Of a stretch of 64,000 nucleotides of DNA, positions 7,145 through 48,663 are shown piece after piece; position 1 is the stretch's first letter; each line of letters begins with the position of its first letter. Made by a program: the position numbers and the translations under genes. A model generated the notes under the pieces. The model ran no database searches, was not told the DNA's origin, and saw only the letters and a list, made by a program, of their open reading frames with translations. The DNA lies in contig CAJFCJ010000007.1 of the NCBI GenBank assembly GCA_904063045.1, positions 3,665,404 through 3,729,403 on the forward strand, in the 5' to 3' direction. This stretch comes from Dimorphilus gyrociliatus. Taxonomy: Eukaryota; Animalia; Annelida.

Positions 7145-8866
7145 ATGGATGAAACATATAATGAGCAAGTGTGCTGTATAAACCCACCTGTTGAAACAAT
7201 AATCAAAACAAATATGCCCTCAAACCCTAACGATTCAATCGTTAAAAGGAAACCGATTGGTTTAGCAATCGATAATGAATCGTTCGAAAAAGTAAATAAG
7301 CATCGACGTAGTTCTGTGCCAACCACGCCCTCAGCTCCTGACATCGTCATAACGAGTGCAATGAATGGTGGAAACGACTCTTCGTCCGAGTAAGTTCTAC
7401 AGAAAGAATTAATTAACGCATGAATTTTTTATTCAATATCCACAGGCATGAACAACGCCGACCCAGAGCTAGAAGTTCATCCGTCCAAGTTGCGAGCGAA
7501 GTGTCCAATATTGAGTTACGTGAAGAGCTTATAGCTGCTCGCCATGAATTGGAACGACGAATAGCGAAAAATGAAGAATTAGAACGGGTTCAAGAGCAAA
7601 TGAATGGGGAAGTAACAGAGTTAACAGCCTCTCTATTCGAGCAAGCAAATAAAATGGTTCAGGAAGCTAATGTTAAAAGGATGCAAACTGAAAATGAACT
7701 AAAAGCCGCTAACAATAAAATAGAAATGTTACAAGCCGAAGTCTCCGCCTTGAAAGCCCTCGTAATTACTTCAACTCCAGCAACTCCAAATAAACACTTA
7801 CATCCTCAATTGGATGCATCAGCCCAAGCCTCTCAAAAACAGGCTACACCGAACAAATTTGCCAAGAAAAGTGGTTTTGTCAAAACTCACCGAAGATCGA
7901 CAAGCCATCATCAATTTACTCGTGATGAAATGTCAGCCGTTAATATTAACTTGATTAAGCCTAGTTCAGAGGCAAATAGAGAACAAAATGCCAATGAAGA
8001 AAATCGTAACAATGAAGATTGGGGTGTAAGTAATTGTTTATTGTTACGACATAAGATTAGCAATAAATTATTATAAACTAAAGCTACTTTATGTATAGAC
8101 AAAAAAAATAGTATACTAATTCAAATATTTATTAATAGCAAGCAAAAAATCAAAGTACAAAATGTGTTTTGTTCTAAATAGATCGATCCAGTATACTTTG
8201 ATGAGTTTAACAATTGGAAAAAATCTCCTAAATTAGACGATCGTAACACATTTCTCGGTCGAATTGCAGACGAAGATATTCTACCATGTTTAGATTTTGC
8301 AAACAATAAATTATCTCAAAATATACACTGGGTATGTTATTATTTATAGAGAGGAATGTTAAATGAGAATTTGAAAAAAAAGTAGAATTGCAATTGACTT
8401 TTGTTTTCCTTTCCTCCTTAGTCAATTAAGAAAAACACGATGGCAATAGAACCAGTACCGGACAGAAATCCCCTGCCCAGAATGTGTTCGTTAACTGAAA
8501 GGAATAATATTTGCAAATACAGAGTTCGGTTAGGAGATAACGAAGAATGGCATTATGTTTCCAAATTGGCTAGAAATAGGGTCATTATAGTTATTTTGAT
8601 GGCAATTTAACAGCCATTCATATCTTTAATTTTTTTTATAGATAGCCGCCGTTGCTGATTTCTACACTTACATTCGTTATATAACATTGGGCCTAGTGAA
8701 AAGTCAAGGTAAAATTTTATTATATAATAGATTTTATCTTCTTTGATTTTTATTGTTAGTAGTAACAAATTGTTTTTTATCACTTTAAACAGATGCAGAA
8801 ATGTTTCAACATGTAATGAAACTCCGAAAGCAGATGTGTGTTGCACGTTTAGGTTACACCATTTAG
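7145..8866 (+). CDS. RAB3IP: Rab-3A-interacting protein / Rabin8 (Sec2 family Rab8 GEF)
   Basis: Six exons in consistent phase: 7145-7389, 7446-8025, 8182-8331, 8422-8580, 8642-8708, 8793-8866. Contains the Sec2 coiled coil (ELTASLFEQANKMVQEAN) and the C-terminal motifs EDILPCLDF, CKYRVRLGD, VADFYTYIRYITLGLVK and MKLRKQMCVARLG. Confidence 0.93.
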
Positions 8867-9572
8867 AAACAGGCTTTATTATTAGAATACTCACATGTTT
8901 GTGCCAAAGTTTTTCTACTTAACTTCTTATTTCATGAGATAAAAAGACAAAATATGAGCTTTGTTTCCTTTCACAAAAGAATTATTAACTAGATTTTGCT
9001 AAAATTTTCTAGTCGTAATGGTGCGTAATCTTATTTTTTTATCAAAAAGAAACAGCATAAATTACAAACAACAATATTTTTTAGATAAACTAGATAGAAT
9101 TTTGTATGCTAGTATTTACTTAAAACTTGCTTAACCATTGGCATATTTAAAACAAAGTTAATAGCACATGTGTCGCATTATTGTCGATTAAACCATTGGA
9201 CAATTTCAACATAATGTACTAACCAAAATTTTTACATCTGCTCTATTCAAATTCGTAATCGTGTGAAGTCTCTTGAGTATGATTAATTAATTGTTCTTTA
9301 TGTAATCCAATTGTACTTTTTATTTCACTTTTTTTCATGAAAATTGAAGAGCCTTTTTACATTAAATAATGTTATCATCCTGTTACGAAAGGTCTTAATG
9401 AACTATGTCGAACTTAATGACTGCACTTTCCACCTTTTATATTACCTAATCTTGCCGCTATATTCGACTTTCATCTAGTTTTAAAAAGCATTTAGAGAAA
9501 AATTGCACAAATTTCGAGAAAGCATGTTAATAATGCTCTTCTTGGCAAGATTCGGGCGTCTTCGAGTGCCTT

Positions 9573-9818
9573 CTAAAGTGCCATCGAATGATCATTCTGC
9601 TTCATAAAAACAAGTTGGAATTTCAAAGCGTTAAAGATTTTGTGACTAAGCAAATTATCACCGTATTCTTTGCCTTTGCATGACAGGATAATTTCTCCCA
9701 CCTAAAGAAAACGATTCAATTAGACTATATTATATAATACAAAGAATGGAATTTAATTAACATTTTTTACCTCATCGTTTATTCCCAAACTCTCACTTAA
9801 AAAAAAGAAGATAGACAT
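9573..9818 (-). CDS. Possible 58-aa orphan ORF in two exons
   Basis: ATG at 9818, donor gag|gtaaaa at 9770, acceptor ctttag| at 9702, stop at 9573-9575 (MSIFFFLSESLGINDE|VGEIILSCKGKEYGDNLL...). No recognisable homology. Confidence 0.3.
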
Positions 9819-10005
9819 TCTACATCCGTTTTATAAGCATATCGACGTATTATCTAAGCTGAGTCATGATATTTTCAAACTTTGAATTACCCAATATAGA
9901 ACAAAACAATAACAATAAAAGAACAATACACTCAGGAAATAATAGAGATAAGGAGCTAAAAGGAAAAAAAAAGCAACTTATAAGTAAACAAAGAGACAGT
10001 ATATT

Positions 10006-10627
10006 ATGAATGTTATTAAATTAATAATAAAAAATCTATTCTATGTATTTATTCTATAGAAATTATGCTAATTAGATAAATTTATTTGCAGTCTTTTAAA
10101 GTAACATATAAGAAAGGGAATCAAAAAATAGAGAATTGTATTGCAGAGAAAACCATAGTTAATTTGACGCCTTGTATAAGGATTGGAGATTCAAAAGAGG
10201 AAATATTCTTTAAGGCAATGTCAGCTATACATATAACTAAAGATGATAAGGATAATAGATTGATCAAATTTGGGATGCCAGTTAGTTTTCCTTCTCCTCT
10301 GTTTGATATATTTTACATAAATATATATAAATATCTGCGTCATACAAACTAAATATATATTTATTATTATATTTTTTTTATGAACAAAATAGGATAATGA
10401 GTTCCATCTTAAATTTAAGAATGAAAGAGATGCTGAAAATTTCTATAAACTTGCCATTAAAGGTTACAATTACGTTTTCTTACGTTGCTGCCGATAGTTG
10501 ACTTATTTCTTTTTTTTTTTCTGTCCTATATACTATGTAAAATACAGACTCCGGGCCGACTATCACTTTTAGCTTTACCAATCTTCGTGTAGCTTGCTTT
10601 GATTTCTTCGGAGAGATAAAGGAATAA
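10006..10627 (+). CDS. Orphan protein of about 126 aa, possibly a PH-like fold
   Basis: Four exons with canonical sites and matching phases: 10006-10044, 10092-10280, 10393-10462, 10548-10627. The sequence is beta-rich and followed by a helix-like FKNERDAENFYKLAIK segment. The fold call is inference only. Confidence 0.6.
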
Positions 10628-11297
10628 AGTATTAGTTTCGCTGATTCCTTCGATAAAATGACTGCATTTCCATGTTTTTATTAGAAAACGAATATCCTAG
10701 AATCACATATCATCTTTTGGAATCTTTGTACATAGAGAACGTTGAATTTTGAAATCGAATCTTTAATGAATATCTTAATTATAATATAAATGTTCTAAAA
10801 GCTAACTTAGAAAACATAACAATAAAATCAGAATGAATATATGTTTATTATAATATTAAGCGTATTTGTTTGGAATTATTACCCGAAATTTAGATAATAA
10901 CCCTACTTTAGGCACGATTACTTCAAAAGAATAATGTAATTAGAGCGATAATATTTAATTCTTTACGTTACTCCCACTATGTTGACGATTCCCAATGGAA
11001 TCTTGTTTGAAATGGGAACCATTATAATCATAAATTAACTCATTTAAGATTTCAATAATTATTATCCCTCGTGAATCAGCATAAAAGAAAATTTGGATAA
11101 CTATAAAGATAAAATCCCTTTAGAATCCCCTAGAGTGGTGATTAGTTTTGGGAATTTAGCCAAAACATAATCTATCTTTTATGTATATTTAGATAGATTT
11201 TAACCTATTAAATTTACCTCTTGCTTTGTTTTTTTTTTTAAAAAAATATCTATAAACCATAAAAAAAAAAAATAATTCCAGTTATAAGAAAGCAAAA

Positions 11298-32435: not shown

Positions 32436-35400
32436 ATGGCGCCGGCCAAGACAGAATTATTGTTTATCGACACATTTTCTCATAGCTCATCAGATGTATG
32501 TCTCAATGCACCAATTAAATGAAAAAAATAACTTGATATTTTATTTTTGCAGGCGATCAATTTGGATTTAATACAATTCATAAGACCGGTGGTAGTTAAA
32601 GAAGTAAGAGTTATTCCGCTTGGTACTCGGGTCCAAGCCGATATACCGGGAGGCATTCGTTTAGGGTAAGTAAAAGCTTTTAGCCTCAAAATCGATTGTA
32701 AAAAGACATTATAACAGTGCAACGAATCCTTCTCAATTCGATTTGGATATATTTGTAAATAATTTGAAGGAACAGACCTCAACATTTGAAAAATTCGGAA
32801 AGTAGGTTTATCATGTGCGCTTTTTATTACCACTTTAAATTTATCACCTCTTTGCAGTATCAAATATAAAGCAAATGTAAATATTCTCTTCGAAGCTGAT
32901 GGAGAGGTTAGAAATGTAGAATATTAGGACAATTATATTTTAAAAACGATCTTAATGCTGTTTAGCCTATACCAACCGATGGCTTGGTAATTCGGGGTAT
33001 TTACACGACTATAACATTGGCTGTCTACGGAAATGAGACTATTCAAACACGATCCGTATCACCGCCTATTCAACAACCGAAGGTTAGAGCCCCTGATGTC
33101 CTCACCACTCGACCTGTTGGTGGAGGAATTAATCGTCCAGATAATTTAACAAAGCCACCCATTGATCTACCTGGGGTCAATCAAAAAGTATCAGAATGGC
33201 TCTCAATGGCCCCTTCACCTCAACCATCCCCAACCAGACCCATCTCACCACACAATAATGATCAAAGGCATGTAGCATCCACTGCTGTCTCCCAAAATGC
33301 TCAGTCTTCACCTAATGATCCTCCACCATCAATACCAATCGAATCTACTGGACAAGTTCATGATCCCAGGGCTTCTAGAGCCCGAATGGAAGAGGCTATG
33401 CCAATTACAGTTGTTACAAGTATGCGCATTGGTAAAACTGAGCCTGTTCCAAATCCAACACTAAACGAAGTAACGGACGATACGGAACCGGGAGAAATTC
33501 CTGAGGATATCGAAATGGTCTCAGTAAGTGCATTATCAGACCGCTTTTTTGCTGTTTTTCTAATAATAAATTAATTTATAAGGATGAAGAATGTCAAAAA
33601 GGCTATGAAACTATTTCGTCCGGTGAAGATAATTTATCAGATTTAAATGGTGTTCCATCCCGTAAACAATTAACTGATGTAAGTTACCATACAAGTAACT
33701 AATTATAATCTGTAAAAATACTGACATTTAACTATCAATTGTAGATGGACGTAAGCGGTTTAGATATTGTTGATAGCGAAGGATGGACCTATGGAGTTGC
33801 TAGTTTCAACCCTTATCAATTTCAATTGGTACCCCTTGAAGCATTTTCAGATCCGGCTCTAACTCCTCATGAAATTGCGGTACATAAGCTAAATGACAAC
33901 AAATCATTATCCTGCCAAGAGGCTGATAGGATATTACAATATATCCAGAAAACTGAAGGATCTGACGCTGATTGGGTAGATCGTATGGAACAGGTTACAG
34001 ATATGTTAGTTCCTGGACTCGCCCATCTTATGATAACTGAATTCAAAAATCAAGTTTTGGATTGCTTGTGTGAATGGGCATTAAGAGGATTAGACACTGA
34101 TTCGGCAAGTCGTCAACCTGTTACTCACATGGTCCGACATTTAAAAGCTGGTATTCGATTGTGTGGAGCTCTTTGTGCATGCCATGATGATATTGCGTTC
34201 CGTCTATTACATCGCGACGTACAACATCAGCTTGTGCAACTACTCGGTAGAAGGGAAATGGCGTCGTCGATAAAATTGTTAATTCTCCGTTCTTTAGATC
34301 AAACAACAAGGGTAAAAGATGGTCTTTTATGGTTTATTGGTGGTCATCCAATACAAAAGAAAGTTGACAAATGCGTTTACGCTGAGCTAATTGAACAAGT
34401 TATTGATGATAGACATGATCAAAGAGTTCTTAAAGCTCTAAGTGCTTTATGCAACAAATTAAATTTATATGACTCTCTCCACGCTCTGAATGATAATGTT
34501 AGACTAACAATAGCTCAAACTGAGGAGGCTTTACAAAAAGTTGTTGATAAAGAAGATGAAGAATTTATTATAGAGCCCCTGCAAGACGACGTTGTTCAAA
34601 AAATTGTTACCTGTCTTGAACATATGACAAGATCTCTTATTAATGCGAGATTTACTCTTTCTCAACCATCAAGAATTCCAATTCGAGAAGTTTTATACGA
34701 AGTTCATCTACCCTCTCACGATCCCCTACCAGATATTTTAAGGATTTTCAATAGTTCTGGAATTCTAAAAGCTTGCAACGTATTACTGACCAGTCCATCC
34801 TGTACTCAACATCCGTCTATCATTCTTGCAGCAAAGAAACTTATTGAACAGTTGTGCTCCTCACAAGCTGGATTACTATTTCTTGCATTCAATCCGGATC
34901 CTGTTAATAGTCTAATTATGAGTATTTTGCAAAGTGTATCTAGGGACGATAGTGAAGAATCGATGAGCAATTCATTTGTCTTACACCTAGTTTATCATTT
35001 GCAAAGTCTTCTATATGTAGATGAATTAAAAATGACTATATCTCGGGGTGGATACGTACTAGGAGTCTTACATAATCTTTTTGTTCTAACTTTGTCCCCT
35101 ATTGGAAGAGATGCAGTTGTTCGGGTTTTGGGTTTGGAAGATAACCTTTTACCGCTCCTTCAACTAGCCGATATTGGCGAAATAGATAAAGAAGACGTTG
35201 AACTTAAAAAGAAAGCTATACTTTTACATTATGTGTTTAATTTAATTTTACTCGTTCTAAGACATTCTACCAATACCGCATCACTACTTGAACGTCATGG
35301 ACTGTTGTTAAATAAGCTTTCGAAAAATGAAATGACGATCATGCCAAAAATTAATGAAAAGATTCACGAAATGTCCGAATTCTTATCACCAATATCCAGC

Positions 35401-37845
35401 ATTCTTGATAAACCAACGTCCTTGGAAGTTTTACCAGTTCTATTAGAGCAGATGAAACATCTAGTCGATGATATTGAATGTACAATACCAAAAGGTTTAG
35501 TAACTATTTTACGACTTTTACAATCATTTCTTGTGCAACCAGTCAATAACGAATGGCCAGTTCAACTTGTTTATGAGAGGGCAGTGGCCGAAAGTCAGGG
35601 AGCAATACATTATCTTGCAAATATTGTACAAAAATGTGCAGATATCACAAGAACACCTTGGTTAAAATGTATACCTCTTCAACCCAATACGAAGACGCTA
35701 ATAATATCAACTCTAACGACGGCCTTGTCATCGTTAACCGCTTTACTACAAAAGACGATTAAAGCTCGGGGACTAGACTTTAAGGATACCACAGCAGTTG
35801 AAAGTCTATTTAACGCTCATGCAGTGTTCTGTTCTGTTACTCCAAATGGACACTTGAGCAAGGAGCAGCTGGATATACAGGAATATATAGTTGCGTGTTT
35901 GGCAGCCTACACTCAACCTCTCATTTGCGATAACAAGGCTGTTTCTCAGTCTGTTTGGACTGGAACTCTGAAAAATTTATTAAAATGGATGCTCACAGCC
36001 CCATATACTATTCTGTCTGGATTAGTATTACTCAGCGAATTATTACCTTTACCATTGCCAATTCAAACAAAGAAAAATCTCGAGAAGGATGATCAATATT
36101 TAATAATTCAACCTAGAAAATTATGCAGTGCCCATTTACTACCCTTGGACGAACAATTACGCGATGTTGTAAACACTTTAGCAGTGTCCAGTTGTAGTCC
36201 TTTACAACACATTTTGAAAAGGGTGTGCTGGCAGCTATCAGATTTAACTGCTCCATCTGCATCTGTAATGGCAACTATTGTTTTAGATCTGGTAGCAAAG
36301 ACTATAGATGATTCAGGAGGTTTATCTAATTCCAACTTAGTTCGCGTTCTAGATTTATTAGTCTTCCTTGCTGATAAGCCATCATTTAAAGCAGCAGCAA
36401 TTGCACTACTTAATGAGGAAACATACGAAAACATTCTGAGAAAGATTGCGTCACTTCTCAATGTAGTTGATGAGCAAAATCGTTGGCATAGCGTTGTTCA
36501 GGAGGCAATAATTGGTGTTTACCAGTGTCTATGTGACTGTGAGGTATCTCTACTATCGTTAGATCAACACTCAGTCGCCGAATGTGTATCAAATTCTTTG
36601 CCATCAAAAAAGCACCTTTATATTATCATTGAAAGTATATTTATGCATATTGGTTCGCCAGATCAAAGTTATACCAGCGTAATACCATCTTTGAAGACTT
36701 TATATATTTTACTTGAACATGACTTTGGACTATCTCTCTTACACGAATATCTCGCTGAAAGAGACAGTAGCGTTTTTTATGTTTTGTTTGACCGAATCAA
36801 TGGAACTTTTAGTAAAGACAGTCATGACCACATAGCAACGCTTACAGCTGCTGTGGAAGTTCTCCATATGATGGTTCAAAATAAAAGGAAAGATATCATA
36901 ACGATCAACAGATTAAAACTTATGCTAAACTGGCCTAAAGAGATGCATCCTCTTGACGATCTCGAAAACCTACTATCAGCGCAAATAGAAAAACAAGATG
37001 AAAATTTGAGAACTCTCCACGACGCAATGAAAGATCTCGTTTCAATTTTAAAAGAGGAAGATATGAGTAATGAATGGAAACCAGTAGAACTTCCAAATCC
37101 GCTACCTTTGCACGAACTCTTTAACTTGAGAACTGTCTCCATGTTTGCTGAATCAGATGAGAATAGACTAAGTGACACTTTTTGGTTGGCAACACCCATG
37201 GGAGGAGAGGGAGAGAGAGAAACTGTTCCCGTGAATTTAATTGAAATTGTTAATGAGCATTTACCTGATGTCAAACTGAAGGAGGAGCTAATGAAGGATA
37301 CAGATGTTGCAACAGCACGTAGAATTCGGGCTCGTGCTCCTCGCCGTCAAATGGATATGATTAATACCAGTAAAACGCAAGGATCTAGTAGAGGAGCTTT
37401 CGCTGCCCCAATGAGAGGAAGGGGATTTGCAAGAGGCGCAAGTACTCGTAACGACCTATTTCGTTCAAGGCCACCAAATACTTCGAGACCGCCATCTATG
37501 CATGTCGATGACTTTATTAAGATGGAAAATTCTGAAAGTGCTCCAGATGATGCTACTGTAATGCCTCCACCTCCAACAATAACTACTACTCCCGACCGTC
37601 CGAGATCAATATATCCTGGACCATCATCGGTTGGCTCAGGGTATCGACGAGAAGATCCACAACAGTGGAGATCAAAGACCTACGCATCATCTGATTCAAA
37701 TCACTATTCATCGATAGACACTCGGAACTTTGGGCAGAACTATTTGTATAACAAATTCGTAATTAATCCACAAACACAGACGCCTAATTCACCGTATAGC
37801 CGAAGAACAGATGCTCGAAACTATATGCGTCCTGTTCCTAAGTGA
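32436..37845 (+). CDS. VIRMA: Virilizer / VIRMA (KIAA1429), scaffold of the m6A methyltransferase complex
   Basis: The N-terminal VIR_N domain spans six short exons (ELLFIDTFSH, VVVKEVRVIPLG, FDLDIFVNN, TDGLVIRGIYTTITLAVYG). A single 4.1-kb last exon (33745-37845) contains ELLPLPLPIQT and the C-terminal DLFRSRPPNTSRPPSMHVDDF. Confidence 0.95.
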
Positions 37846-37917
37846 AAATATTTTATGGAATGTTCTTTTTTTTATTTTACAGTAAATATATAAATTTTTT
37901 GAAACAAATAATAATCA

Positions 37918-39230
37918 TGAACAGAGACACTAAGCGGCAGGATTCGTCCTCATCAGTTCCAGATCACTTTTCATCATATCTTCGACTAGTCCCTATCAAA
38001 AAAAAACACATATAGTATTCAACCTTTCGCAATCCTTTACGACTTACTTCAAAATCGAACTTTGGTTTCCAGTTCAATTCTCTCCTAGCTTTTGTAGAAT
38101 CACCTTGAAGGTATTCAACCTCCGTTGGTCTATAGTACTTCGGGTTTACGTTAACTCTTATTATGCCAGTTCCCTTTTCTTTTCCAACCTCATCAGCGCC
38201 CTCACCTGACCACCTAAAAAATGAAAAGAGTAGAAAGAAGGTCGACTTTCCTATGTAAAACTACTGACTCAATAGATTTACCAACAAATTTGAAAGCTGC
38301 CTCAACAAATTCTCTAACACTGTGAACTTCTCCCGTCGCAATAACATAATCGTCACTATTATCTTTCTGTAACATCAACCACATAGCTTCAACATAATCC
38401 TTTGCGTGTCCCCAATCGCGCTTTGCGTTCAAATTGCCTAACGAAAATGACTCCATCAACCCCAGATGAATTTTCGCCACTGCTCTTGTTATCTTTCTCG
38501 TAACGAACGTTTCTCCTCTTCTGGGTGACTCGTGATTGAATAGGATACCATTCGAAGCGTGAATTCCATAAGCTTCTCTGTTGTTGATCACAGTCCAGAA
38601 GGCAAATTGCTTTGCTATTCCGTACGGAGACCTTGGATAGAATGGTGTGTCTTCATTTTGCGGTATTTCTCTCACTTTTCCATATAACTCACTGGAAGAA
38701 GCCTGATAGAATCTAACCTTTTGAGTCAATTTACAGGCTCTAATCGCCTCAAAAACACGTAGTACACCCATACCGTCCACGTCGGCTGTGTATTCGGCGA
38801 TTTCAAAAGATACTTTAACATGACTTTGAGCGCCAAGATTGTAGATTTCGTCTGGCTGAATTTCATTAATTAGCCTCATCAAACAGGAAGTATCAGTTAA
38901 GTCACCATAATGTAACTTCATTCCTTTTTTAACGTCGAAATGGGAATTATAAATATTGAAATGATATATTTAACATTCAAGGACTTACTTCCTTCCTGGT
39001 GGATTTTAGGATCATCGTACAAATGAGTTATTCTCCCTGTATTAAATGAACTAGAACGTCGTATGATGCCATGGATCTGTGATAATGTAGATTAGCTGCA
39101 TTCATTATTAGCGATGAGTAATTTTAGTTACCTCGTAGCCCTTATCGAGCAGGAATTCGGCTAAATAAGAGCCATCTTGTCCACTTATTCCCGTAATAAC
39201 GGCAACTTTTGACTTAACAACAGGACAACT
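37918..39230 (-). repeat. Left arm of a 1313-bp near-perfect inverted repeat (partner 46671-47983)
   Basis: Paired coordinates sum to 85901 throughout, so there are no indels. A line-by-line manual comparison found only two mismatches (39220 vs 46681, 38220 vs 47681), and the introns are included in the identical tract. Confidence 0.93.
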
Positions 39231-39262
39231 GGTATCGTCCAAAGAAACTCCTTTTGATGTTT
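37930..39262 (-). CDS. GMDS: GDP-mannose 4,6-dehydratase, copy 1 (first coding exon not located)
   Basis: [104 protein letters not shown]; stop at 37930-37932. The exon starting at 39262 follows a phase-1 acceptor, so the ATG exon lies further upstream. Confidence 0.95.
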
Positions 39263-40397
39263 CTGTAATTGTAATTAGAGAATGTTGAAAAATAACTTTT
39301 CTAGTGGCTGATTATTATATAGAGAGGATGAAAATAGAACTAAACTTTTCCCTACTAGAAAATGACTATGTCCATAAATTGGGTCTACTATTCCTTTTAT
39401 TAGGGTACTTTAATGTTCGCAAGGATTATAAATATGTAATACAGAAGGGATAGTCTATATCTATTCCTGATTTTGTACAGTCATTTTTTACATGTTAATA
39501 ATGTCGTTGTAATAATTGTTGAGACAATGTTTTTTTAACAAATACAATATTTATAGTCAATACTTGAATTATTCAACAAGTATAAGGAATACGGAAAGTG
39601 TTTAAGGCTTTTTAGGAAATGTTTTGGTATTATTTGCATATTATCCTAGTTTCTATCCTACTTTTTTAAGTTGGTATTCGCAATGTAGGTGGCTAACCAC
39701 AAACAAAACGTTAATCTTATACGAAACAAAGTATATAAAGGAATAGCAAAATAACGCCAAACCTAAGTATAAGTAGATAACAAAAAAGAAGAAATGATAA
39801 CTTGAAAGACGTGTTAGAGGTGACGGTAACATAGCTAAATGATTATAAATAAATTTTGAATTGAGCGATAATATGTTGAGGAACGTCTCAAGTGTTATTC
39901 AGTAGTGTCATCTCAAGTTAAAATGAAATATTCATTTATTTATCTATTTAAAAAATGCTTTAAAACACTAATACTTTTTAAATTGTTTTTATTTGAAAAG
40001 AATGCGTGTATGTCAAATATTTCTGCTTATATATATTGCCAATAAGCACGCTTAAGCTATTAGCTCTCGATGTTTCTACTATAAAGAGTAGGCAACTTTA
40101 AATAATTATATCGTAAATTTCTTTCCCAGACAATAAACATTATATAAAATGTCAAATAGACAGTTGTTTTCGTTTGCTTGAAAATAAATTGGTTAGAAAG
40201 AGTGTCAAACCGATTGATTTCCAGACACAACTCAGGTTTTTGCCTACGACATCCCCCAGAAAGAAAACTATAGACTCGTCCGCCTTATAATAAAAGGCAG
40301 TCTCTCTCTCTATTATTCCTCATCTAACTCGAAGAAACACCGTCCCTTTTTCGATATCAGAGTTAAGCGACCCAAATCGACAACCTAAGAAAATATC

Positions 40398-41488
40398 ATG
40401 TCTTCAAATTGTGGTAAGTGATATTTCTCTTGCAATCTTTAAGAAACATTTGGAAAAAATCGGCTTTTTCTAAAATGATGTTGGGCTTGTTCCACGTGAC
40501 GTCAAAAATTTAACGTTACTGCGTATTATGTTAAACAGCTGCAAGTGAAGGTCCAAGAGAAAGGGTATTAGTTACCGGAGGAGCCGGTTACTTAGGATCA
40601 ACGTTAGTTCCAATGCTCTTAAACCGAGGCTATGAGGTCACGGTATTCGATAGACTATCATGGGGCGTTAATCCTTTACTACCCGTGGCTGGCGACTCAA
40701 AACTACGCTTGATTCAAGGTGACGTCTGTAACGAAGAGGAATTAGCTGCGGTTATGAAAGATGCCGATGCAGTTATCCATTTGGCCGCCATCGTAGGTTA
40801 TCCCGCTTGCGAGAAGGATCACGAATTGGCAAAGAGGGTAAATGTTGAAGGTACTCGAAACGTAACCAAATTGCTCGCCAATCGGAAAGTAATTTATGCC
40901 TCCACTGGTTCATGCTATGGGGCTGTCTCGGGAGTATGTACCGAAGACACACCAATCTCTCCTTTAACGTTGTATGGATCAACCAAAGCTGAGGGTGAGA
41001 GATTATGTCTTGAAGCTGGGGGCGTTGCCCTGCGATTGGCTACAGTCTTTGGCGTTTCTCCTCGTCTTCGTTTAGATTTACTAATTAATGACCTAACATA
41101 CAAAGCTTTAACATTGAAAGAATTCGATCTTTATCAAGGGCATTTCCGTCGTACATTTCTTCATGTTAGAGATGCTGCTAGGGCTTTTATTTTTGCTCTT
41201 GAGCATTTCAATGACATGCGCAAGAAAGCCTACAACGTTGGAGATGATAAAATGAATATGTCTAAAGAAGAAGCCGCTAAAGTCATTCAAGATGAAGTGA
41301 AAAATTGTAAAATTACACCTAACCACTCAGGAGAAGATAAAGACAAACGTGATTACGAAGTCTCTTATCAGAAACTCTGCTCTCTAGGCTACTCATCAAC
41401 GATATCTGTTCAAGATGGCGTAAAAGAATTATTAAAAATTCTACCTCACATGACTCCTGAAGAAGCTATGAAATGCCGTAACGTCTAG
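40398..41488 (+). CDS. Extended-SDR NAD-dependent NDP-sugar oxidoreductase/epimerase, resembling the bacterial GDP-D-glycero-D-manno-heptose dehydrogenase (Cj1427-like) family
   Basis: Exon 1 40398-40413 (MSSNC, phase-1 gtaagt) and exon 2 40539-41488. Rossmann TGGAGYLGS and catalytic YGSTK (YxxxK). Family-type motifs [47 protein letters not shown] and [12 protein letters not shown]. The family assignment is from memory of Cj1427 and needs an HMM/BLAST check. Confidence 0.85.
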
Positions 41489-41809
41489 AGGCATTAAAAT
41501 AAGTATAAGGATAAAACACAAGTCTCAGTATTTCATTATATGAAGAAAAAAGTCTACAAATTTTGTCATAAAAGATGAAATATTTTTGTCTTATGGAAAT
41601 TAAGATATAAAAAACGAAAAAAATACAACTAATTGAAATATTCTCATATTAATTGGAGTTGTTACTTGTTACTATTTACATGGGTACAATATTCATTCAT
41701 TACAATACTTTAGTCATTTATCTATGACTCATTAATTCACGTGGAAAAATCTCGCTCTTATCATCTTATAAGACATATGTTACAGAATACTACATTCCTA
41801 TTAAGCCCA

Positions 41810-42850
41810 TAGCAGCATCATTTTTCATGGTACAGGAGATTGTGTAATTCTAAATGATGCTGAGAAATGGAACTTGGAAATCCCTTTACTCTTTTCTATC
41901 AAATATAAAACATCAATAATACTATCAAACATGGAAGAATTAGGTCAATACTTGTAAACATACCAATTATTATCGGCTTATCTTGATATGGCTCTAAATG
42001 AGTTTTGTGAAATGAAACAAAAGACAAACAATATATTCTACTCCATGTTGGAAGAGATATTGTAAAAACTCGATAATTTGCCAAGAAAAGTCGAAAAATG
42101 TTCCCAATAGCTTTCCTTACCCCTCCCTCCTACATATTTGACATTTATCTTTTCCATTACAAATTTGTTTCGTATTGCTTTTACAAAATTAACAACATCT
42201 GCCATATAGGAAAGTTCCACTTGGCCATATAGCTAAAAAAAAAGTTATAGATAAAATGTGTAGTTTATTTTATGGAGTTAACGAAAAAAGGCAAACTATC
42301 TGTTTTTACAGTAAGCCTTTGTAATTTAACAGTTCATTTCACCGTATACTCGCATGTTTTCCTACTTGGTATTGAATATTCAAATCTATTTATATATTAT
42401 GTTGAATATACTCGTTCTATCCCATAAACGTTTTATTATATTTCCGTTTCTTACTCTAAATCTTTTTTTCAAGTGATAAACATGGAATACTTAAGCGATG
42501 ATTACTATGTAAAGAGCTTGTAATATACTCTAAAATGGCAATTAGATACGCTTTTTCCTCTTAATTGTGACATTTAAATTAAAAAATCGATAATTAAGTT
42601 TCAAATATATGAAATGAGAAAAAACACTATCAAGGCACGCATTATATGACCTTTTGACCTTAAAATGTTGATTTCAACGACCCTTAGTTGAACAATTAAA
42701 GACTTTTGGTATCTCGTCTACCAATTGATAATTATTCAAACATTTAATTTTACCAGATGAATCCAAACAATCCCTGTAATCCTTTTTTTAATTTCTATAG
42801 GAATTTTAATCCTAATCTATAATCTATGACCATATATAGATGTATAAATA
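41810..42850 (-). pseudogene. Decayed copy of the 3' part of the mosaic receptor gene (source about 48881-50110), same orientation as the source
   Basis: Matching blocks, e.g. tagcagcatcattttt (41810) vs 48881; ctacatatttgacattt...aggaaagttccacttgg (42120-42224) vs 49228-49322; acaattgataattattcaaacatttaatttt (42721) vs 49984. Has stops, frameshifts and deletions. Confidence 0.85.
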
Positions 42851-42863
42851 TATCTATATATAT

Positions 42864-43059
42864 CAGAGTCGTGTTGAAGTATCCTTTGAAATAGCCCACT
42901 ATGCGGCTAAGAGGCTGATGATATGAGTGTTTTGAAATAATTAAAGCCTGTAAATTAACTCACAAAGTTAGACTATATCAAGCTCCTTCCAGTGAATTAT
43001 ATGGAAAAGTTGGAGAAGTCCGACAAAATGGAGACACACCATTCTATCCAAGATCTCCG
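42864..43059 (+). pseudogene. Decayed GMDS fragment (third copy)
   Basis: Aligns to 47073-47276 and reads QSRVEVSFEIA...[38 protein letters not shown] with a frameshift/deletion and a stop. Confidence 0.88.
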
Positions 43060-43109
43060 GCAGGTTAGCCAAGATATTTGCGTCTTAGACAGTCGCGCTG
43101 AGATATGTT

Positions 43110-43770
43110 GGAGAGACCGTTACTTATATTATAAAGTGGACGAGTCTACAATCCTTGAGCTTGGGGATGTCCTAAGCGCAAGCCTGAGACATATTTTCGA
43201 ATATATCGGCTTGACATTGGTTTTAACTAATCTATTTGCAAGCAAAGGAAAATAACTATCTATTTAACATTTTTTATAAAGTTTAATGTGTGAAAGAGAA
43301 ATTTATAATCAAACTATTTAATGTTGCCTACTCTAAAATAATAGAAAATCTAATTCCTCAAAGCTAATTGGCTGAAATAATTCTTAGCAATTGACATAAC
43401 TAAAGACTATCTCACATATAGAAATCGTTTTCAAATGAAACAATTTAAACAAAGTTATAGTTTCAAAGTGTTTTCTAAATAGATAAATAAATGATTATTT
43501 CATTTTCACTTGAGATAACATTTCATATGAGAAGTTCCTTAACGAATTTTCGCTCAATTATGAAGGTTAACGATTTACCTATGTTAATGTAAACTCCAAC
43601 GCCTTATCAACTCATCTCTTATACCGTTTAATTATAATTAGGTTGCATATTATTCGCCTTCCTTTATATACTGTATTTTAGTAATGATAAACGTTCTAAT
43701 CATAGTTAGACTCCTCAACTTGAGAATACAAAAGTAGACTAGAATCAAGGAACATATCTAAATAATGCAA
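43110..43770 (-). repeat. Decayed inverted copy of the GMDS1/SDR intergenic (shared promoter) region about 39620-40310
   Basis: Reverse-complement matches include tagactcgtcc (40271 vs 43138-43148), gacatcccc, ttatttaaagttgcctactct, taaatagataaataaatgaatatttcatttt and ttcctttatatact. Confidence 0.8.
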
Positions 43771-43965
43771 GTGAGATTATCTTGGATTTAAGCACTGAGA
43801 TAACATACTAATATATACACGAATGTCAGATGCAAATGATTAAAAAAAATAGCCCTAATCGGTACTCACTATGAACATGTAATGAAAAAAAAAAGACAGC
43901 TGGCTATAATTCTATACATCTCTTAATGACAAAGCCTGCATGATTCACGATTCAATCGATTGTTC

Positions 43966-44395
43966 AAAACGATTGGAAAATGCTCGTTGAAATAGGAAAG
44001 ATATTGTTAATTTTTTAATACTAAACAACTAATTCTTATATATATTTAATTGTATATAACGACAAAAATAATAAACTTCTTACCGTTATTCATCGCTCAA
44101 ATATTACTGGGTAGTTAATGAATAAAAATCCAAATTTCCAACGTATGCTTAATTGATCTTTTTAATTTAACAAGCGTAGGGAATGTGTTTTTTCGTAAAA
44201 CAATAAAAGATTAATCGAACGCCGAAAATTATCTTCAAAATATAATCTAATTAGTTGGTACGGTTCCAAAAAAATTACCAAAATTTATTATCCTTGTTGT
44301 ATCTTGTTGTCATGGAAACCCCTCAATAAATTTCTGTTCACTTTGCAAATTTTCAGACTGCAAAGAATATTTATGTTCACATTAACTATTTAATG
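43966..44395 (-). repeat. Inverted copy of the PPP1R42 promoter and non-coding exon (source about 17100-17531), X-box retained
   Basis: Colinear reverse-complement match that includes the donor (cttaccgt) and the X-box GTTGTCATGGAAAC at 44306-44319. Roughly 75-85% identity by eye. Confidence 0.85.
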
Positions 44396-44699
44396 AAACA
44401 GAGGGTAGCGTCTATTATTTTCTGTTTATTCCAATCAATGAAACGTTAAATAAAGAGAGCCATGACAACACACCAACGCTTTCAGCTACTGTGAAGGTTC
44501 TTCTTAAGATTGAAAATACCAGGATATGGATTATCTGATTCAAAAATAACTATTTACTGATAAACACCCATGTATTTGGGCCAAACTATTTGCATTACAA
44601 ATTCATAATTCATATCCAAACACAGGCTCATAATTATCACTTTAGGCAAAGAATAGATTCTCGTAACTATATCAATCATGTTCCTAATGTTAGCGATTT

Positions 44700-45066
44700 A
44701 GTTTGTAAAAGTATTGCCTTCAGATTCAGTACTACTCACCACAAACAATCAGTTGGATGAAACGCCTATGTGGGTCATGTTGAATCCAACAAATTTGAAT
44801 CTATTCTTTTGAAAGATAAGTGTAAAAGTCTTATTGAAACTCGACTTTTAACTATACAAGATATTATTGGTAATAAGTCATTAACAAAACTGAAAGTTGT
44901 CTGAATTTTCAACTTAGGGAAGCTAAATTCAACGTTTTAAGGATATATGAAAGCTTATTACATGCTTTGGTTGAATATTTCTCATTTTATGTATGTTGAA
45001 ATTCTATTTTAGTTATATTTCCAAATGGAACTTTATTAAAAGATGAGCAATGTCAATTTAGAAAAA
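44700..45066 (+). pseudogene. Decayed inverted fragment of the mosaic receptor gene
   Basis: 45020-45066 (ccaaatggaactttattaaaagatgagcaatgtcaattt, PNGTLLKDEQCQF) matches the CPSGTFLKDGRCQFC exon near 49290-49325. Weaker similarity upstream (SIAFRFSTTHH vs TLAFRLVTTTH). Confidence 0.55.
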
Positions 45067-45077
45067 CTTCTGTTTTG

Positions 45078-45297
45078 TACTTTTTCTCATTTTAATGCTT
45101 CAAGATGTTACGGCATTTCACGGCTTCTTCAGGAGTTATTTAGGGTAGAATATCTAAAAATGTCTTTGCTTCCTCTTGTACCGATATCGTTGATTTGTAA
45201 ACCATAAAGCATAGTTCCGGCTTAGAGACTTTGTAGTTACTTGTGTCCTCAACATATCCCTGGATGTTTAGGTGTAATTTTGTAATTTTTCTCTTCT
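45078..45297 (-). pseudogene. Decayed inverted copy of the 3' end of the SDR oxidoreductase gene
   Basis: Reads ...YKVSKPELCFMVYKSTISVQEEAKTFLDILP*ITPEEAVKCRNI versus the intact [44 protein letters not shown]. Premature TAA at 45140-45142 plus a frameshift; 3'UTR similarity at 45078-45100. Confidence 0.9.
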
Positions 45298-45305
45298 TAG
45301 CAATA

Positions 45306-45430
45306 CATTTTGAAAAGAGTGTGAAGCATCTATGCTATTTAAATCTTTCATCGGCTTCAGTAACGAAAACTATGGACAATTACAGAGGTTTATCTAATTC
45401 CAACTTAATTCGCATTCTAGACTTATTAGT
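45306..45430 (+). pseudogene. Decayed VIRMA fragment (source about 36210-36362)
   Basis: HFEKSVKHL...GLSNSNLIRILDLLV versus VIRMA HILKRVCWQL...GLSNSNLVRVLDLLV, with an internal deletion. Confidence 0.88.
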
Positions 45431-45440
45431 AAACCAGGTG

Positions 45441-45510
45441 GAGTTATTCTTTCTGCATGGAATGAACTAGAATGAAGCCTGATGCCATGAATAGTCTGTG
45501 ATAATGGAGA
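45441..45510 (-). pseudogene. Decayed GMDS fragment (fourth copy; source about 39025-39091)
   Basis: gagttattct...aatgaactagaa...gatgccatg...ctgtgataatg matches GMDS1 and reads IHGIRLHSSSFHAERIT versus [17 protein letters not shown]. Confidence 0.8.
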
Positions 45511-45527
45511 TAGGTTGTATTCTTTGA

Positions 45528-45710
45528 GCTATCATATCAATATTCAACCTAACCATTCTTTAGTTCATTCTAAAAAGTTGAAATGTTACATTTAAACATT
45601 TGAAAAAAAAGAGTTACATTGTTAAAATCGTAGAAATGTTTTAATGAATAGCATATTTGATCATGCTGAATAGGCTATAGAAAACGATTAAAAAATACCC
45701 GTTGAAACTA
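45528..45710 (-). pseudogene. Younger inverted copy of the PPP1R42 5'UTR and first 10 codons (source 17500-17684)
   Basis: About 11 mismatches in about 183 bp by manual count. ATG GTT AGG TTG AAT ATT GAT ATG ATA GC is retained (ATG at 45556) and runs into the GMDS pseudo-fragment. Confidence 0.92.
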
Positions 45711-45763
45711 TAGATCTATTGTGAATTTTTAAAATTAAATACAGCAAAGTCTATTTTAAAGTA

Positions 45764-46670
45764 TACAAGATTCACGACTTTTCAACCTTATTGTTCTTAA
45801 GTACGGGGAAGATGCTTCAGCGAGAGGCCAAAGTTGGCTAATTTTAATGACTTTACAATTATAATTTCGACTTATTAAACATTGCGAAATTCTTCTTCTT
45901 ACAATCTAAATAAAAAAACACAATAACCATATTGCTAAATACACATAGTGAGAACTAAAGAGTCTACCAATGAACACAATAGATGACCTTATGAACTTGA
46001 AAAGTTGATGCCAACGCCCTAATTTGAACAGTTGAAGAATTTTTGTGTATCGTCTAACAATTGATAATTATTCAAGTATTTAATATTACAAGATAAACCC
46101 AAATAATATCAGTAGTCCTTTTTTATTTCTATAGGAATTTTACTTCCTTATCTAAATGATGAACTTTGCATAGAATATCGACAAGATTAGCTTAAATCTG
46201 TCGCATCGAAGACTGAATACCTTAGCGATTAAAAGTTTTTCTAGTAAAAAAAAAAATCGTTATACTTCCGTTTTGTCAATACTTAATGTTAATATTATCT
46301 GGTACAGTTTTCAAATGAGTTTGAAAAAGAGATCTTTAAATTACCTATCAATTTAATTGATTTTGCTATTGGAAAGCCAACAGATGGCAGAGTTTCATTC
46401 CTTTCCATAATGGAAAAGGTAATTTTAGATGTAATATTTTAACTATTCTAAGGCCTATATCCTAAAATAGCCTTCTTTAGGGCCAATACTCGAAAATGAT
46501 TGATCGCTTTATTGAAACTAACCGTGCACCTGTAGGCTTTACTATTCAATTCAAAATGGCCTATATAGGCGTTATCATTTGACAGATTGCTTCGTGGCAA
46601 CTAGTCGTGCACCTGTAGCAATACTATCACAGTCTAAATGGCTAATAAGAGCGTTTCTTCTGACAATAAT
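45764..46670 (-). pseudogene. Second decayed same-orientation copy of the mosaic receptor gene (source about 49600-50510), ending in an 83-bp tandem duplication
   Basis: tacaagattcac (45764) vs 49602; gtctaccaatg; ttttatttctataggaattttac; cagatggc; ccaatactcgaaaatga. CGTGCACCTGTAG is repeated at 46523 and 46606. Confidence 0.85.
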
Positions 46671-47971
46671 AGTTGTCCTGCTGTTAAGTCAAAAGTTGCC
46701 GTTATTACGGGAATAAGTGGACAAGATGGCTCTTATTTAGCCGAATTCCTGCTCGATAAGGGCTACGAGGTAACTAAAATTACTCATCGCTAATAATGAA
46801 TGCAGCTAATCTACATTATCACAGATCCATGGCATCATACGACGTTCTAGTTCATTTAATACAGGGAGAATAACTCATTTGTACGATGATCCTAAAATCC
46901 ACCAGGAAGGAAGTAAGTCCTTGAATGTTAAATATATCATTTCAATATTTATAATTCCCATTTCGACGTTAAAAAAGGAATGAAGTTACATTATGGTGAC
47001 TTAACTGATACTTCCTGTTTGATGAGGCTAATTAATGAAATTCAGCCAGACGAAATCTACAATCTTGGCGCTCAAAGTCATGTTAAAGTATCTTTTGAAA
47101 TCGCCGAATACACAGCCGACGTGGACGGTATGGGTGTACTACGTGTTTTTGAGGCGATTAGAGCCTGTAAATTGACTCAAAAGGTTAGATTCTATCAGGC
47201 TTCTTCCAGTGAGTTATATGGAAAAGTGAGAGAAATACCGCAAAATGAAGACACACCATTCTATCCAAGGTCTCCGTACGGAATAGCAAAGCAATTTGCC
47301 TTCTGGACTGTGATCAACAACAGAGAAGCTTATGGAATTCACGCTTCGAATGGTATCCTATTCAATCACGAGTCACCCAGAAGAGGAGAAACGTTCGTTA
47401 CGAGAAAGATAACAAGAGCAGTGGCGAAAATTCATCTGGGGTTGATGGAGTCATTTTCGTTAGGCAATTTGAACGCAAAGCGCGATTGGGGACACGCAAA
47501 GGATTATGTTGAAGCTATGTGGTTGATGTTACAGAAAGATAATAGTGACGATTATGTTATTGCGACGGGAGAAGTTCACAGTGTTAGAGAATTTGTTGAG
47601 GCAGCTTTCAAATTTGTTGGTAAATCTATTGAGTCAGTAGTTTTACATAGGAAAGTCGACCTTCTTTCTACTCTTTTCATATTTTAGGTGGTCAGGTGAG
47701 GGCGCTGATGAGGTTGGAAAAGAAAAGGGAACTGGCATAATAAGAGTTAACGTAAACCCGAAGTACTATAGACCAACGGAGGTTGAATACCTTCAAGGTG
47801 ATTCTACAAAAGCTAGGAGAGAATTGAACTGGAAACCAAAGTTCGATTTTGAAGTAAGTCGTAAAGGATTGCGAAAGGTTGAATACTATATGTGTTTTTT
47901 TTTGATAGGGACTAGTCGAAGATATGATGAAAAGTGATCTGGAACTGATGAGGACGAATCCTGCCGCTTAG
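46638..47971 (+). CDS. GMDS: GDP-mannose 4,6-dehydratase, copy 2
   Basis: In-frame ATG at 46638 ([35 protein letters not shown]). From 46671 it is essentially identical to copy 1, with the same four internal introns; stop at 47969-47971. Confidence 0.93.
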
Positions 47972-47983
47972 TGTCTCTGTTCA
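46671..47983 (+). repeat. Right arm of the 1313-bp near-perfect inverted repeat (partner 37918-39230); spacer 7440 bp
   Basis: See left arm: two mismatches, no indels. Confidence 0.93.
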
Positions 47984-48057
47984 AGATGATGTTTTGTTAG
48001 AAAAAATTTATATTTCTACTTTAAATTAATATAGAAACATTCCGCAAATATTTAAAT

Positions 48058-48522
48058 TTTAGAACTAAATGCAAACAGTTCAGAGCATCTGTTCTTTGCT
48101 TAAAATGTTAATTGTTAGTCTATGTTTTGGGAATGAATTACGAATTTGTTATAGAAATTGTTCTGCCCAAATATGTGGGCGTTTGTCGATAAATAATAAT
48201 TCGAATCAGATGATGCATATGTCGTTGATCTCTTTTGTCGTTGATGATCTTGTTAATATCTTGAACTAGACGACGATTTTGAAATTTTGTTTTTTTTCTG
48301 TTTTGTTTGATTGTAAGTTTTCAAGATCTTGAAGAGAATGCATCTTTAATCTAGAATAGCAATAGCTTTAGTCTGGATACATTTATGATGTATTTTCTTG
48401 TATTTTCAATCTTAACATGAAGAATTTTTAGAGTTGAAGTATACATTTCTAGGTGATCTTGATTGTCTTTATTAAGGTTCCATTAATTCGGTCAAACAGA
48501 TCAAAGAAAACGGTTTTATCTA
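48058..48522 (-). pseudogene. Decayed inverted copy of the VIRMA 3' end, continuing the GMDS inverted duplication
   Basis: gagcatctgttct, aattacgaatttgttat..aaat.gttctgcccaaa and gaatcagatgatgc match the reverse complement of 37680-37845. 48455-48522 (gttccatt.attcggtcaaaca) matches the reverse complement of about 36770-36830. Confidence 0.88.
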
Positions 48523-48584
48523 ATTTTTTAAATAATAAAATGAGAAAATATAACTACTACTGTCTGAACATTAAACATGTTGAT

Positions 48585-48663
48585 GGAAATTATTGGGTGG
48601 TTTCTATGACAACCAGATGAAATAGTGGTAATATTGTTTCGTTAGTTTATTGGAACTATGTCA
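48585..48663 (+). repeat. Third copy of the PPP1R42 X-box promoter core
   Basis: A 34-nt block (2 mismatches) containing GTTTCTATGACAAC (48600-48613) and a perfect 21-nt block TAGTTTATTGGAACTATGTCA match 17163-17240; the spacer between them has diverged. Confidence 0.85.

Follow-up and report, generated by a model that had tools for sequence, protein, structure and literature searches.

A Cj1427-like extended SDR gene of animals and its head-to-head pairing with GMDS in dinophilid annelids

The analyzed window, a 64-kb stretch (64,000 nucleotides) of the genome of the annelid Dimorphilus gyrociliatus, contains an extended-SDR gene at 40398-41488 on the forward strand, accompanied by GMDS1, GMDS2, and decayed pieces of both gene types (Table 1). 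The SDR gene is real, and its 321-aa product is identical to DgyrCDS6541, a protein deposited without a name. The intron was absent from a transcript-like 1133-nt contig of a relative (L085), which showed the exact join between the positions corresponding to 40413 and 40539, and 63% of the 31-mers sampled from 40300-41600 were present in an RNA-Seq run. The dN/dS values of 0.025 and 0.020, obtained in the two comparisons with estimable dS, indicate strong purifying selection. The initial annotation was right to treat it as a genuine animal gene. The GC content of the gene is similar to that of its surroundings.

Table 1. Positions of the SDR and GMDS genes and of their decayed copies in the window.
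Feature	Positions	Strand	Remarks
GMDS1 (DgyrCDS6540), first coding exon	39763..39832	-	Hydrophobic 23-residue N-terminal extension; the deposited 390-aa protein maps here
GMDS1, exons 2-6	39262-39132, 39076-38989, 38923-38269, 38213-38048, 37992-37930	-	GT..AG; the whole exon set reproduces the deposited protein exactly; Pfam GDP_Man_Dehyd 1e-104
Shared divergent intergenic region	39833..40397		565 bp, flanked by the start codons of GMDS1 and the SDR gene; candidate for a bidirectional promoter
SDR (DgyrCDS6541), exon 1	40398..40413	+	Codons 1-5 and one base; ATG, then GTAAGT donor; spliced translation equals the deposited protein
SDR, intron	40414..40538	+	125 nt, GT..AG, phase 1; same position and phase in the dinophilid relative L083
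SDR, exon 2	40539..41488	+	Rossmann motif, Thr128-Tyr151-Lys155 triad, C-terminal substrate domain, stop codon; Pfam Epimerase 4e-35
Decayed inverted GMDS exon 3 fragment	42863-43081		blastn 75%; tblastn 76% over 46 aa
Decayed inverted copy of the GMDS1-SDR intergenic region	43111-43766		blastn 69%
Decayed SDR 3' end (about the last 70 codons)	45066..45313	-	tblastn 47% over 70 aa; blastn 76% over 231 nt
GMDS2 (DgyrCDS6542)	46638-46769, 46825-46912, 46978-47632, 47688-47853, 47909-47971	+	Five GT..AG exons reproduce the deposited protein exactly

GMDS1 (reverse strand) and the SDR gene (forward strand) are divergently oriented, and their head-to-head pairing, proposed initially, is real. The proposed spacing of about 1.1 kb should be corrected: the coding sequence of GMDS1 includes an additional conserved exon at its 5' end, which places the start codons 566 bp apart. 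Exon 2 of GMDS1 has no in-frame ATG, and in the dinophilid relative L083 the open reading frame, length, and TTAG/GT donor of exon 1 are conserved, with 11 of the 23 residues identical. The corresponding start-codon spacing in L083 is 549 bp, and the order VIRMA, GMDS (-), SDR (+) is kept in this relative (L083, L084) despite saturated synonymous divergence. Conserved blocks of the intergenic region, for example, 39860-39920 and a TATAA-like stretch near 40285-40295, are shared by L083 and the decayed copy. The interval of ~0.55 kb probably serves both genes as a bidirectional promoter.

The locus had been regarded as a candidate animal GDP-sugar cluster, and a survey of the linkage in other invertebrates argues against such generality. 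No GMDS gene was found within 10 kb on either side of the SDR ortholog in Ptychodera, Saccoglossus, Mercenaria, Lottia, Nematostella, and Clavelina (6 of 6 animals); in this respect these orthologs differ from the Dimorphilus gene. Among the animals sampled, the GMDS-SDR pairing is lineage-specific and occurs in dinophilids only.

The second intact GMDS gene predicted 5 kb away was present: GMDS2 starts 5.15 kb past the SDR stop codon. It lies inside one arm (46653-48029) of an inverted repeat, the other arm of which occupies 37872-39248; the arms have 17 differences per 1377 nt, only one of them within 46682-47983. At the corresponding position of L083, no counterpart of GMDS2 was found. The decayed copies of the SDR, the intergenic region, and GMDS noted previously do exist. 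Each piece is inverted, yet the pieces follow one another as in the original, with VIRMA fragments in between, so the copying of an intact module as a unit is not demonstrated. GMDS2 and the decayed fragments form a scrambled, lineage-specific patchwork, best explained by inverted duplications and rearrangements that took place later, within the D. gyrociliatus lineage.

A phmmer search of solved structures with the SDR returned Campylobacter jejuni Cj1427 (PDB 6vo6/6vo8) as the best match with an E-value of 2.7e-61, followed by the next structure at 1.7e-16. The AF2 model of the SDR (pLDDT 94) was aligned by Foldseek to Cj1427 with TM of 0.90-0.96, rmsd of 1.5 Å, and 39-41% identity, versus TM of about 0.8 and 27-28% identity for C4 epimerases. 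The likeness to Cj1427 proposed in the initial annotation is thus borne out at about 40% identity, and all four motifs listed there are found in the 6vo6 alignment. The SDR contains the Rossmann motif TGGAGYLGS (GxxGxxG) and YGSTK. Across 42 family members (animal, bacterial MAG, and unlabeled metagenomic sequences), Thr128, Tyr151, and Lys155 hardly vary, and Arg171, Arg183, Asp185, Asn189, Arg210, His214, Asp217, Asp274, and Arg276 are invariant in the same set.

At the position of the dehydratase Glu, the SDR has Ser130 (ASTGSCYG) and Cj1427 has NTNSGYG, while GMDS carries the catalytic Glu (ASSSELYG). The SDR scored 63 bits with the Pfam model GDP_Man_Dehyd, compared to 351 bits for a true GMDS, and TIGR01472 was not among its NCBIfam matches. 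A second GMDS-type dehydratase was rejected on the basis of the Glu replacement and this difference in scores, in agreement with the initial reading. No NCBIfam model reached its cut-off for the SDR (galE TIGR01179, 94 bits versus a cut-off of 262). Weaker structure matches included GalE (1e-8 to 1e-4) and UXS1 (2e-6), and GDP-fucose synthase was missing from the 60 matches listed of the 69 solved structures with E < 1e-3. A housekeeping GALE, UXS1, or TSTA3 enzyme was also rejected, since Cj1427 is a far better match and the galE model remains below its cut-off; the phmmer, NCBIfam, and Foldseek comparisons placed the SDR outside the GALE, UXS, and TSTA3 families. DgyrCDS6541 is best regarded as a functional animal enzyme of the extended-SDR branch represented by Cj1427 (MlghA).

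Cj1427 is an alpha-ketoglutarate-dependent ping-pong C4 dehydrogenase (PMC10680097; PMC7949155), isolated with tightly bound NADH that is re-oxidized by alpha-ketoglutarate (PMC10680097). The animal SDR shares with it the extended-SDR fold, the Rossmann motif, the Thr-Tyr-Lys triad, the lack of the dehydratase Glu, and four long, nearly identical C-terminal motifs. On the contrary, the animal gene has an intron and a different genomic context. Its neighbors are VIRMA, GMDS, and Sushi/VWC/WAP genes, and neither heptose-nucleotide genes nor Cj1430-/Cj1428-type partners, including any 3,5-epimerase or C4 reductase, were found in the window. The extended-SDR fold is common to the SDR and its physical neighbor GMDS, whose catalysis likewise begins with the oxidation of a GDP-manno sugar at C4.

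Among the bacterial genomes found, the closest was that of an Oligoflexia MAG (L003), which encoded a homolog with 53% identity (tblastn). The Cj1427-like gene of this MAG is directly followed by a GDP-fucose-synthase-like gene (1e6u, 2.5e-49), and an RMD-like enzyme is also encoded nearby; no heptose genes were recognized among ORFs of at least 150 aa in about 5 kb upstream and 6 kb downstream. In L004, the neighbors were GmhB/HddA/HddC-like genes, a C-methyltransferase, and an Fcl-like enzyme, while L093 and L094 contained DegT aminotransferases, and heptose-nucleotide genes were not recognized beside these two homologs either. Each partner enzyme beside the bacterial homologs is a consumer of a 4-keto sugar. 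The proposed role of the animal enzyme is similar to these operons in that an oxidase provides the 4-keto nucleotide sugar on which a tailoring enzyme acts downstream. Unlike the animal SDR, which has no such tailoring enzyme beside it, the operons are prokaryotic and include varied partners.

The animal homologs belong to one clade comprising cnidarians, molluscs, echinoderms, hemichordates, tunicates, and dinophilid annelids. Monophyly of this clade received SH-aLRT support of 96, and the branching within it is similar to the species tree. Every named animal among the best 120 matches was a cnidarian, mollusc, echinoderm, hemichordate, or tunicate. Orthologs, including those of Ptychodera flava, Mercenaria mercenaria, Biomphalaria glabrata, and Montipora capricornis, were 59-65% identical to the SDR in the multiple alignment (61-68% by BLASTP), and the bacterial genomes found by tblastn showed at most 53% identity. 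In five of the six other animals sampled, one exon holds the entire coding sequence. RefSeq names already label the animal family Cj1427-like, so this likeness is not new, and no enzyme assay of any animal member was found in the literature searched. These comparisons indicate that the animal Cj1427-like family is old and vertically inherited in marine invertebrates rather than newly acquired. A family characterized only in a bacterial capsule pathway has a strongly conserved branch across these animals, on which no experimental work was found.

Of the horizontal origin considered possible initially, only an ancient transfer remains, since the monophyly and species-tree-like order of the animal clade contradict a recent one. 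Recent bacterial transfer or assembly contamination could be suspected from the bacterial origin of the nearest characterized relative and from the single-exon coding sequences in five other animals. Nevertheless, it is extremely improbable: the SDR has a spliceosomal intron, sits between animal genes, matches its surroundings in GC content, and falls inside the animal clade that tracks the species tree; the arrangement recurs in the independent assembly of a relative, and the identity across animal phyla exceeds that to the bacterial genomes found.

The locus as a whole is best explained, with moderate confidence, by a Cj1427-branch enzyme of an old animal family that is predicted to perform C4 oxidation of a GDP-sugar and is paired with GMDS in dinophilids. 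By homology, DgyrCDS6541 would most likely bind a GDP-linked manno-type sugar and oxidize its C4 with a bound nicotinamide cofactor without C5-C6 dehydration. A partner enzyme would then take over the resulting 4-keto sugar. The gene structure, the selective constraint, the family membership, the spread across animals, and the synteny are direct results, while the GDP-sugar substrate, the C4 oxidation, and any functional coupling of the SDR to GMDS are inferred. Since the substrate of Cj1427 is a GDP-heptose and we know of no GDP-heptose pathway in animals, the substrate of the animal enzyme is a guess, and this enzyme probably feeds an unrecognized GDP-sugar branch.

One candidate product of this branch, and the most attractive one, is GDP-L-galactose. 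The SDR could produce GDP-4-keto-mannose, which TSTA3/FX would 3,5-epimerize and reduce at C4 to GDP-L-galactose for L-galactose-containing glycans. The chemistry parallels that of Cj1427, Cj1430, and Cj1428, the SDR has oxidase-type residues and no dehydratase acid, and the Oligoflexia homolog directly precedes a GDP-fucose-synthase-like gene with no heptose genes recognized nearby. The animal groups named among the best 120 matches, a list rather than a presence/absence survey, are also in line with this route, and alpha-L-galactans are documented in sea urchin and ascidians (PMC3366676). However, both GDP-mannose as a substrate and the use of a 6-hydroxy 4-keto sugar by TSTA3 are putative, and no report of L-galactose in Dimorphilus was found. 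We consider the route unlikely. The family offers one candidate route to GDP-L-galactose in animals that could be assayed with two enzymes. The broader idea that the Cj1427-like enzyme provides animals in general with the missing initial step of GDP-L-galactose synthesis, acting with TSTA3, and that the dinophilid GMDS pair marks a regulated fork between fucose and L-galactose, is speculative and rather doubtful. If true, the GDP-L-galactose reading would account for the occurrence of L-galactans in sea urchins, ascidians, and snails.

The SDR could alternatively work as a reductase, its bound NADH converting the GMDS product GDP-4-keto-6-deoxy-mannose to GDP-D-rhamnose or GDP-6-deoxy-D-talose. 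The head-to-head position of GMDS across 566 bp, kept in a second dinophilid, would suit this reading, as would the tightly bound NADH of isolated Cj1427. The Cj1427 homolog was earlier named WcaG, and a 2011 title in the reference list of PMC7949155 presents WcaG as the reductase in the pathway to GDP-6-deoxy-manno-heptose. Cj1427 was subsequently reassigned as the C4 oxidase (PMC10680097; PMC7949155). The reductase role is made improbable also by the lack of GMDS pairing in six other animals that keep the SDR ortholog and by the tightly bound cofactor, which allows one turnover unless a second substrate recycles NADH. Moreover, D-rhamnose and 6-deoxy-D-talose are, to our knowledge, not animal sugars.

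The adjacency to GMDS could also be incidental, with an SDR substrate unrelated to the GMDS pathway and the arrangement reflecting compaction and retained dinophilid synteny, and we regard this as a serious, although not the leading, possibility. The six animals without GMDS within 10 kb of the ortholog represent four phyla, and the bacterial relatives occur in varied sugar-modification clusters. The flanking VIRMA and Sushi/VWC genes keep their positions in L083 just as well, and positional conservation is therefore not specific to the GMDS-SDR pair. On the other hand, the SDR and GMDS are both predicted to bind GDP-manno sugars, and the intergenic blocks are conserved between the two dinophilid species. 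With a few dozen GDP-sugar genes among ~14,000 genes, a rough estimate of the probability of such a neighbor by chance is well under 1%. The GMDS-SDR pair of dinophilids provides a compact natural system for questions of co-regulation.

The protein encoded by the SDR gene belongs to the Pfam family of NAD-dependent epimerases/dehydratases. Its best match among all PDB sequences was Cj1427, the C4 oxidase of the Campylobacter jejuni capsule pathway (6vo6, 6vo8; E 2.7e-61), and the next one was UDP-glucuronate 4-epimerase (E 1.7e-16). The AlphaFold model (mean pLDDT 94) matched Cj1427 with a TM-score of 0.90-0.96, an rmsd of 1.5 Å and 39-41% identity, as against a TM-score of about 0.8 and 21-28% identity for C4 epimerases and 4,6-dehydratases. 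Every Cj1427-like motif named in the initial annotation is visible in the printed alignment of the two proteins; the assignment is sound, and the observation as a whole proved largely right. The likeness is already known, as the family carries the Cj1427 label in RefSeq. No NCBIfam model reached its cut-off for this protein, and the clusters matched in a protein atlas were all generic epimerases of bacteria and phages. The catalytic triad consists of Thr128, Tyr151 and Lys155, and Ser130 occupies the site of the catalytic glutamate of GMDS. A second dehydratase was rejected as an identity for the SDR, as was membership of the GALE, UXS or TSTA3 families. Cj1427 is described as a ping-pong C4 dehydrogenase that holds NADH tightly and uses alpha-ketoglutarate to re-oxidise it; the epimerase Cj1430 and the reductase Cj1428 act after it in the pathway (PMC10680097; PMC7949155).

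Features of the window and gene neighbourhoods of Cj1427-like oxidases in bacterial and metagenomic contigs
Feature	Position	Strand	Description
DgyrCDS6539	33745-37845		VIRMA (virilizer homologue); 1366-aa ORF, 100% identity to deposited D. gyrociliatus protein
DgyrCDS6540		-	GMDS1, 390 aa; deposited annotation
GMDS1 first coding exon	39763-39832; L083 about 9959-10028	-	Start of deposited protein; ORF, length and donor conserved in L083
Intergenic blocks	39860-39920; 43500-43560; L083 10050-10110		Kept in both species, recognisable in decayed copy
DgyrCDS6541		+	SDR, 321 aa; deposited annotation, nameless entry
SDR exon 1	40398-40413	+	Spliced product is DgyrCDS6541
SDR intron	40414-40538	+	125 nt, GT..AG; same place and phase in L083
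SDR exon 2	40539-41488	+	Spliced product is DgyrCDS6541
DgyrCDS6542		+	GMDS2, 367 aa; deposited annotation
Oligoflexia MAG (L003)	7998-10870		Apparent three-gene operon: Cj1427-like oxidase, GDP-fucose-synthase-like enzyme, RMD-like reductase
Nitrospirae MAG (L004)			GmhB/HddA/HddC-like heptose genes, oxidase, C-methyltransferase, Fcl-like enzyme
L093, L094 (MAG assembly and metagenome contig)			Oxidase paired with DegT aminotransferases

The SDR gene is under strong purifying selection and appears to be transcribed. A transcript-like contig of 1133 nt (L085) from a further, third source, with 96% protein and 87% DNA identity to the SDR, lacks the intron and is joined exactly at the predicted junction, thus resembling a spliced mRNA. 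In one RNA-Seq metatranscriptome, 63% of the 31-mers sampled from positions 40300-41600 were present. The dN/dS ratio of the window against L085 was 0.025, and that of L083, a genomic contig of a related dinophilid, against L085 was 0.020; synonymous sites of the SDR were saturated between the window and L083. In Ptychodera, Mercenaria, Nematostella, Lottia and Saccoglossus (L001, L002, L086, L088 and L089) the coding sequence of the orthologue consists of one exon. In the ascidian Clavelina (L087) it is split, with its parts extending across about 5 kb, and in the dinophilids it has a single short N-terminal intron.

Both genomic contigs of the related dinophilid, L083 and L084, have the order VIRMA (+), GMDS (-), SDR (+). 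Immediately after the SDR in these contigs come the Sushi/VWC genes, whose place in the window is 49.2-52 kb. The sampled dinophilids thus inherited the head-to-head pair from their common ancestor. GMDS was absent within 10 kb of the orthologue in all six other animals (two hemichordates, a bivalve, a limpet, an anemone and an ascidian). The animal GDP-sugar cluster proposed in the initial annotation is thus a real pair in dinophilids but not a general animal feature, and the pairing is lineage-specific. Start codons of GMDS1 and the SDR are separated by 566 bp in the window and 549 bp in L083 because GMDS1 begins in an additional conserved exon; exon 2 of GMDS1 contains no in-frame ATG. The first exon, with 11 of 23 residues identical to L083, adds a hydrophobic stretch of 23 residues (MLPSPLTRLSSYHFFFFVIYLYL) to the N-terminus of GMDS1, which is absent from GMDS2 and from the third GMDS. 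The extension might serve in targeting or anchoring of a normally cytosolic enzyme. The intergenic region contains blocks conserved between the window and L083, for example AATTGAGCGATAATA..TTGAGG and CAGTAGTGTCATCTCAAGTT, which are candidate promoter elements.

The two GMDS copies of the window (46682-47983 and 37918-39219) had one difference in about 1300 nt, and the arms containing them (37872-39248 and 46653-48029) differed at 17 of 1377 positions. The 3' end of VIRMA, co-duplicated with GMDS, retained an identity of about 72-76%. Near-identical GMDS bodies next to a diverged VIRMA end fit gene conversion, and suggest that it may be ongoing and limited to the GMDS gene body. The older fragments comprise a piece of GMDS exon 3, the intergenic region and the 3' end of the SDR, each inverted but placed in the original order, with VIRMA pieces between them. 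Duplication of the SDR-GMDS module as a unit, as initially claimed, does not agree with these fragments, which are individually inverted and interleaved with VIRMA and form no single clean copy; they record repeated rearrangement. The patchwork at 41800-48600, made up of GMDS2 and of GMDS, intergenic, SDR and VIRMA fragments, is missing from L083 (11655-12300). This stretch, GMDS2 included, is a later gain of the D. gyrociliatus lineage.

DgyrCDS6539 to DgyrCDS6542 are consecutive in the deposited annotation. A single uninterrupted 4.1-kb exon supplies 1366 of the 1686 residues of the virilizer homologue. The other large ORFs of the window carried Sec2p, MYND, Sushi, VWC/WAP, calponin and RING domains, and no further sugar-nucleotide enzyme or glycosyltransferase was found among them. 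A third GMDS, DgyrCDS14633 (P0420), is located on a different scaffold, shares 90% protein identity and starts directly with MSKVAIITG; it may be the general-purpose GMDS copy or else a haplotig.

The best 120 database matches had 61-68% identity to the SDR, and the named ones among them came from bivalves, gastropods, hemichordates, sea urchins, a crinoid, corals, an anemone and tunicates. Animal sequences formed one clade (SH-aLRT 96) in a maximum-likelihood tree of 104 sequences, obtained by a quick search without bootstraps and not including Cj1427 itself (the contig scan by query peptide patterns did not return C. jejuni). Cnidarians were placed outside the bilaterian group, within which deuterostome, mollusc and dinophilid subclades were recovered. 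The immediate sisters of the animal clade (P0135 and P0143) were mRNA-like contigs from marine metatranscriptomes, and beyond them lay bacterial and unlabelled representatives with 40-50% identity. The clade, its branching order and its sister sequences indicate that the SDR gene is old in animals. Of the horizontal origin considered in the initial annotation, recent transfer is excluded, as is contamination, by an animal-wide clade with the SDR inside it; a bacterial origin is possible solely as an ancient event.

Cj1427-like genes of bacteria and of prokaryote-type metagenomic contigs adjoin enzymes consuming 4-keto nucleotide sugars. These neighbourhoods agree with, and support, a general mechanism in which a C4 oxidase would generate a 4-keto sugar for use by a partner enzyme; the comparison shows that the sugar differs between members of the family. 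The closest bacterial genome found was the Oligoflexia MAG (53% identity to the SDR). Its apparent operon, with no recognisable heptose-nucleotide gene among the nearby ORFs scanned, suggests a bacterial route that would start from a GDP-hexose. To our knowledge, TSTA3 is the sole animal enzyme acting on 4-keto GDP-sugars, which makes conversion of GDP-mannose to GDP-L-galactose by the SDR and TSTA3, one of the products initially proposed, a chemically reasonable guess. Literature searches on manno-heptose dehydrogenase, on L-galactose with galactogen and on Dimorphilus with fucose gave nothing useful. The biochemistry of the family in animals is readily testable. Alpha-L-galactans are documented in a sea urchin and in ascidians (PMC3366676), and both groups carry an SDR orthologue.
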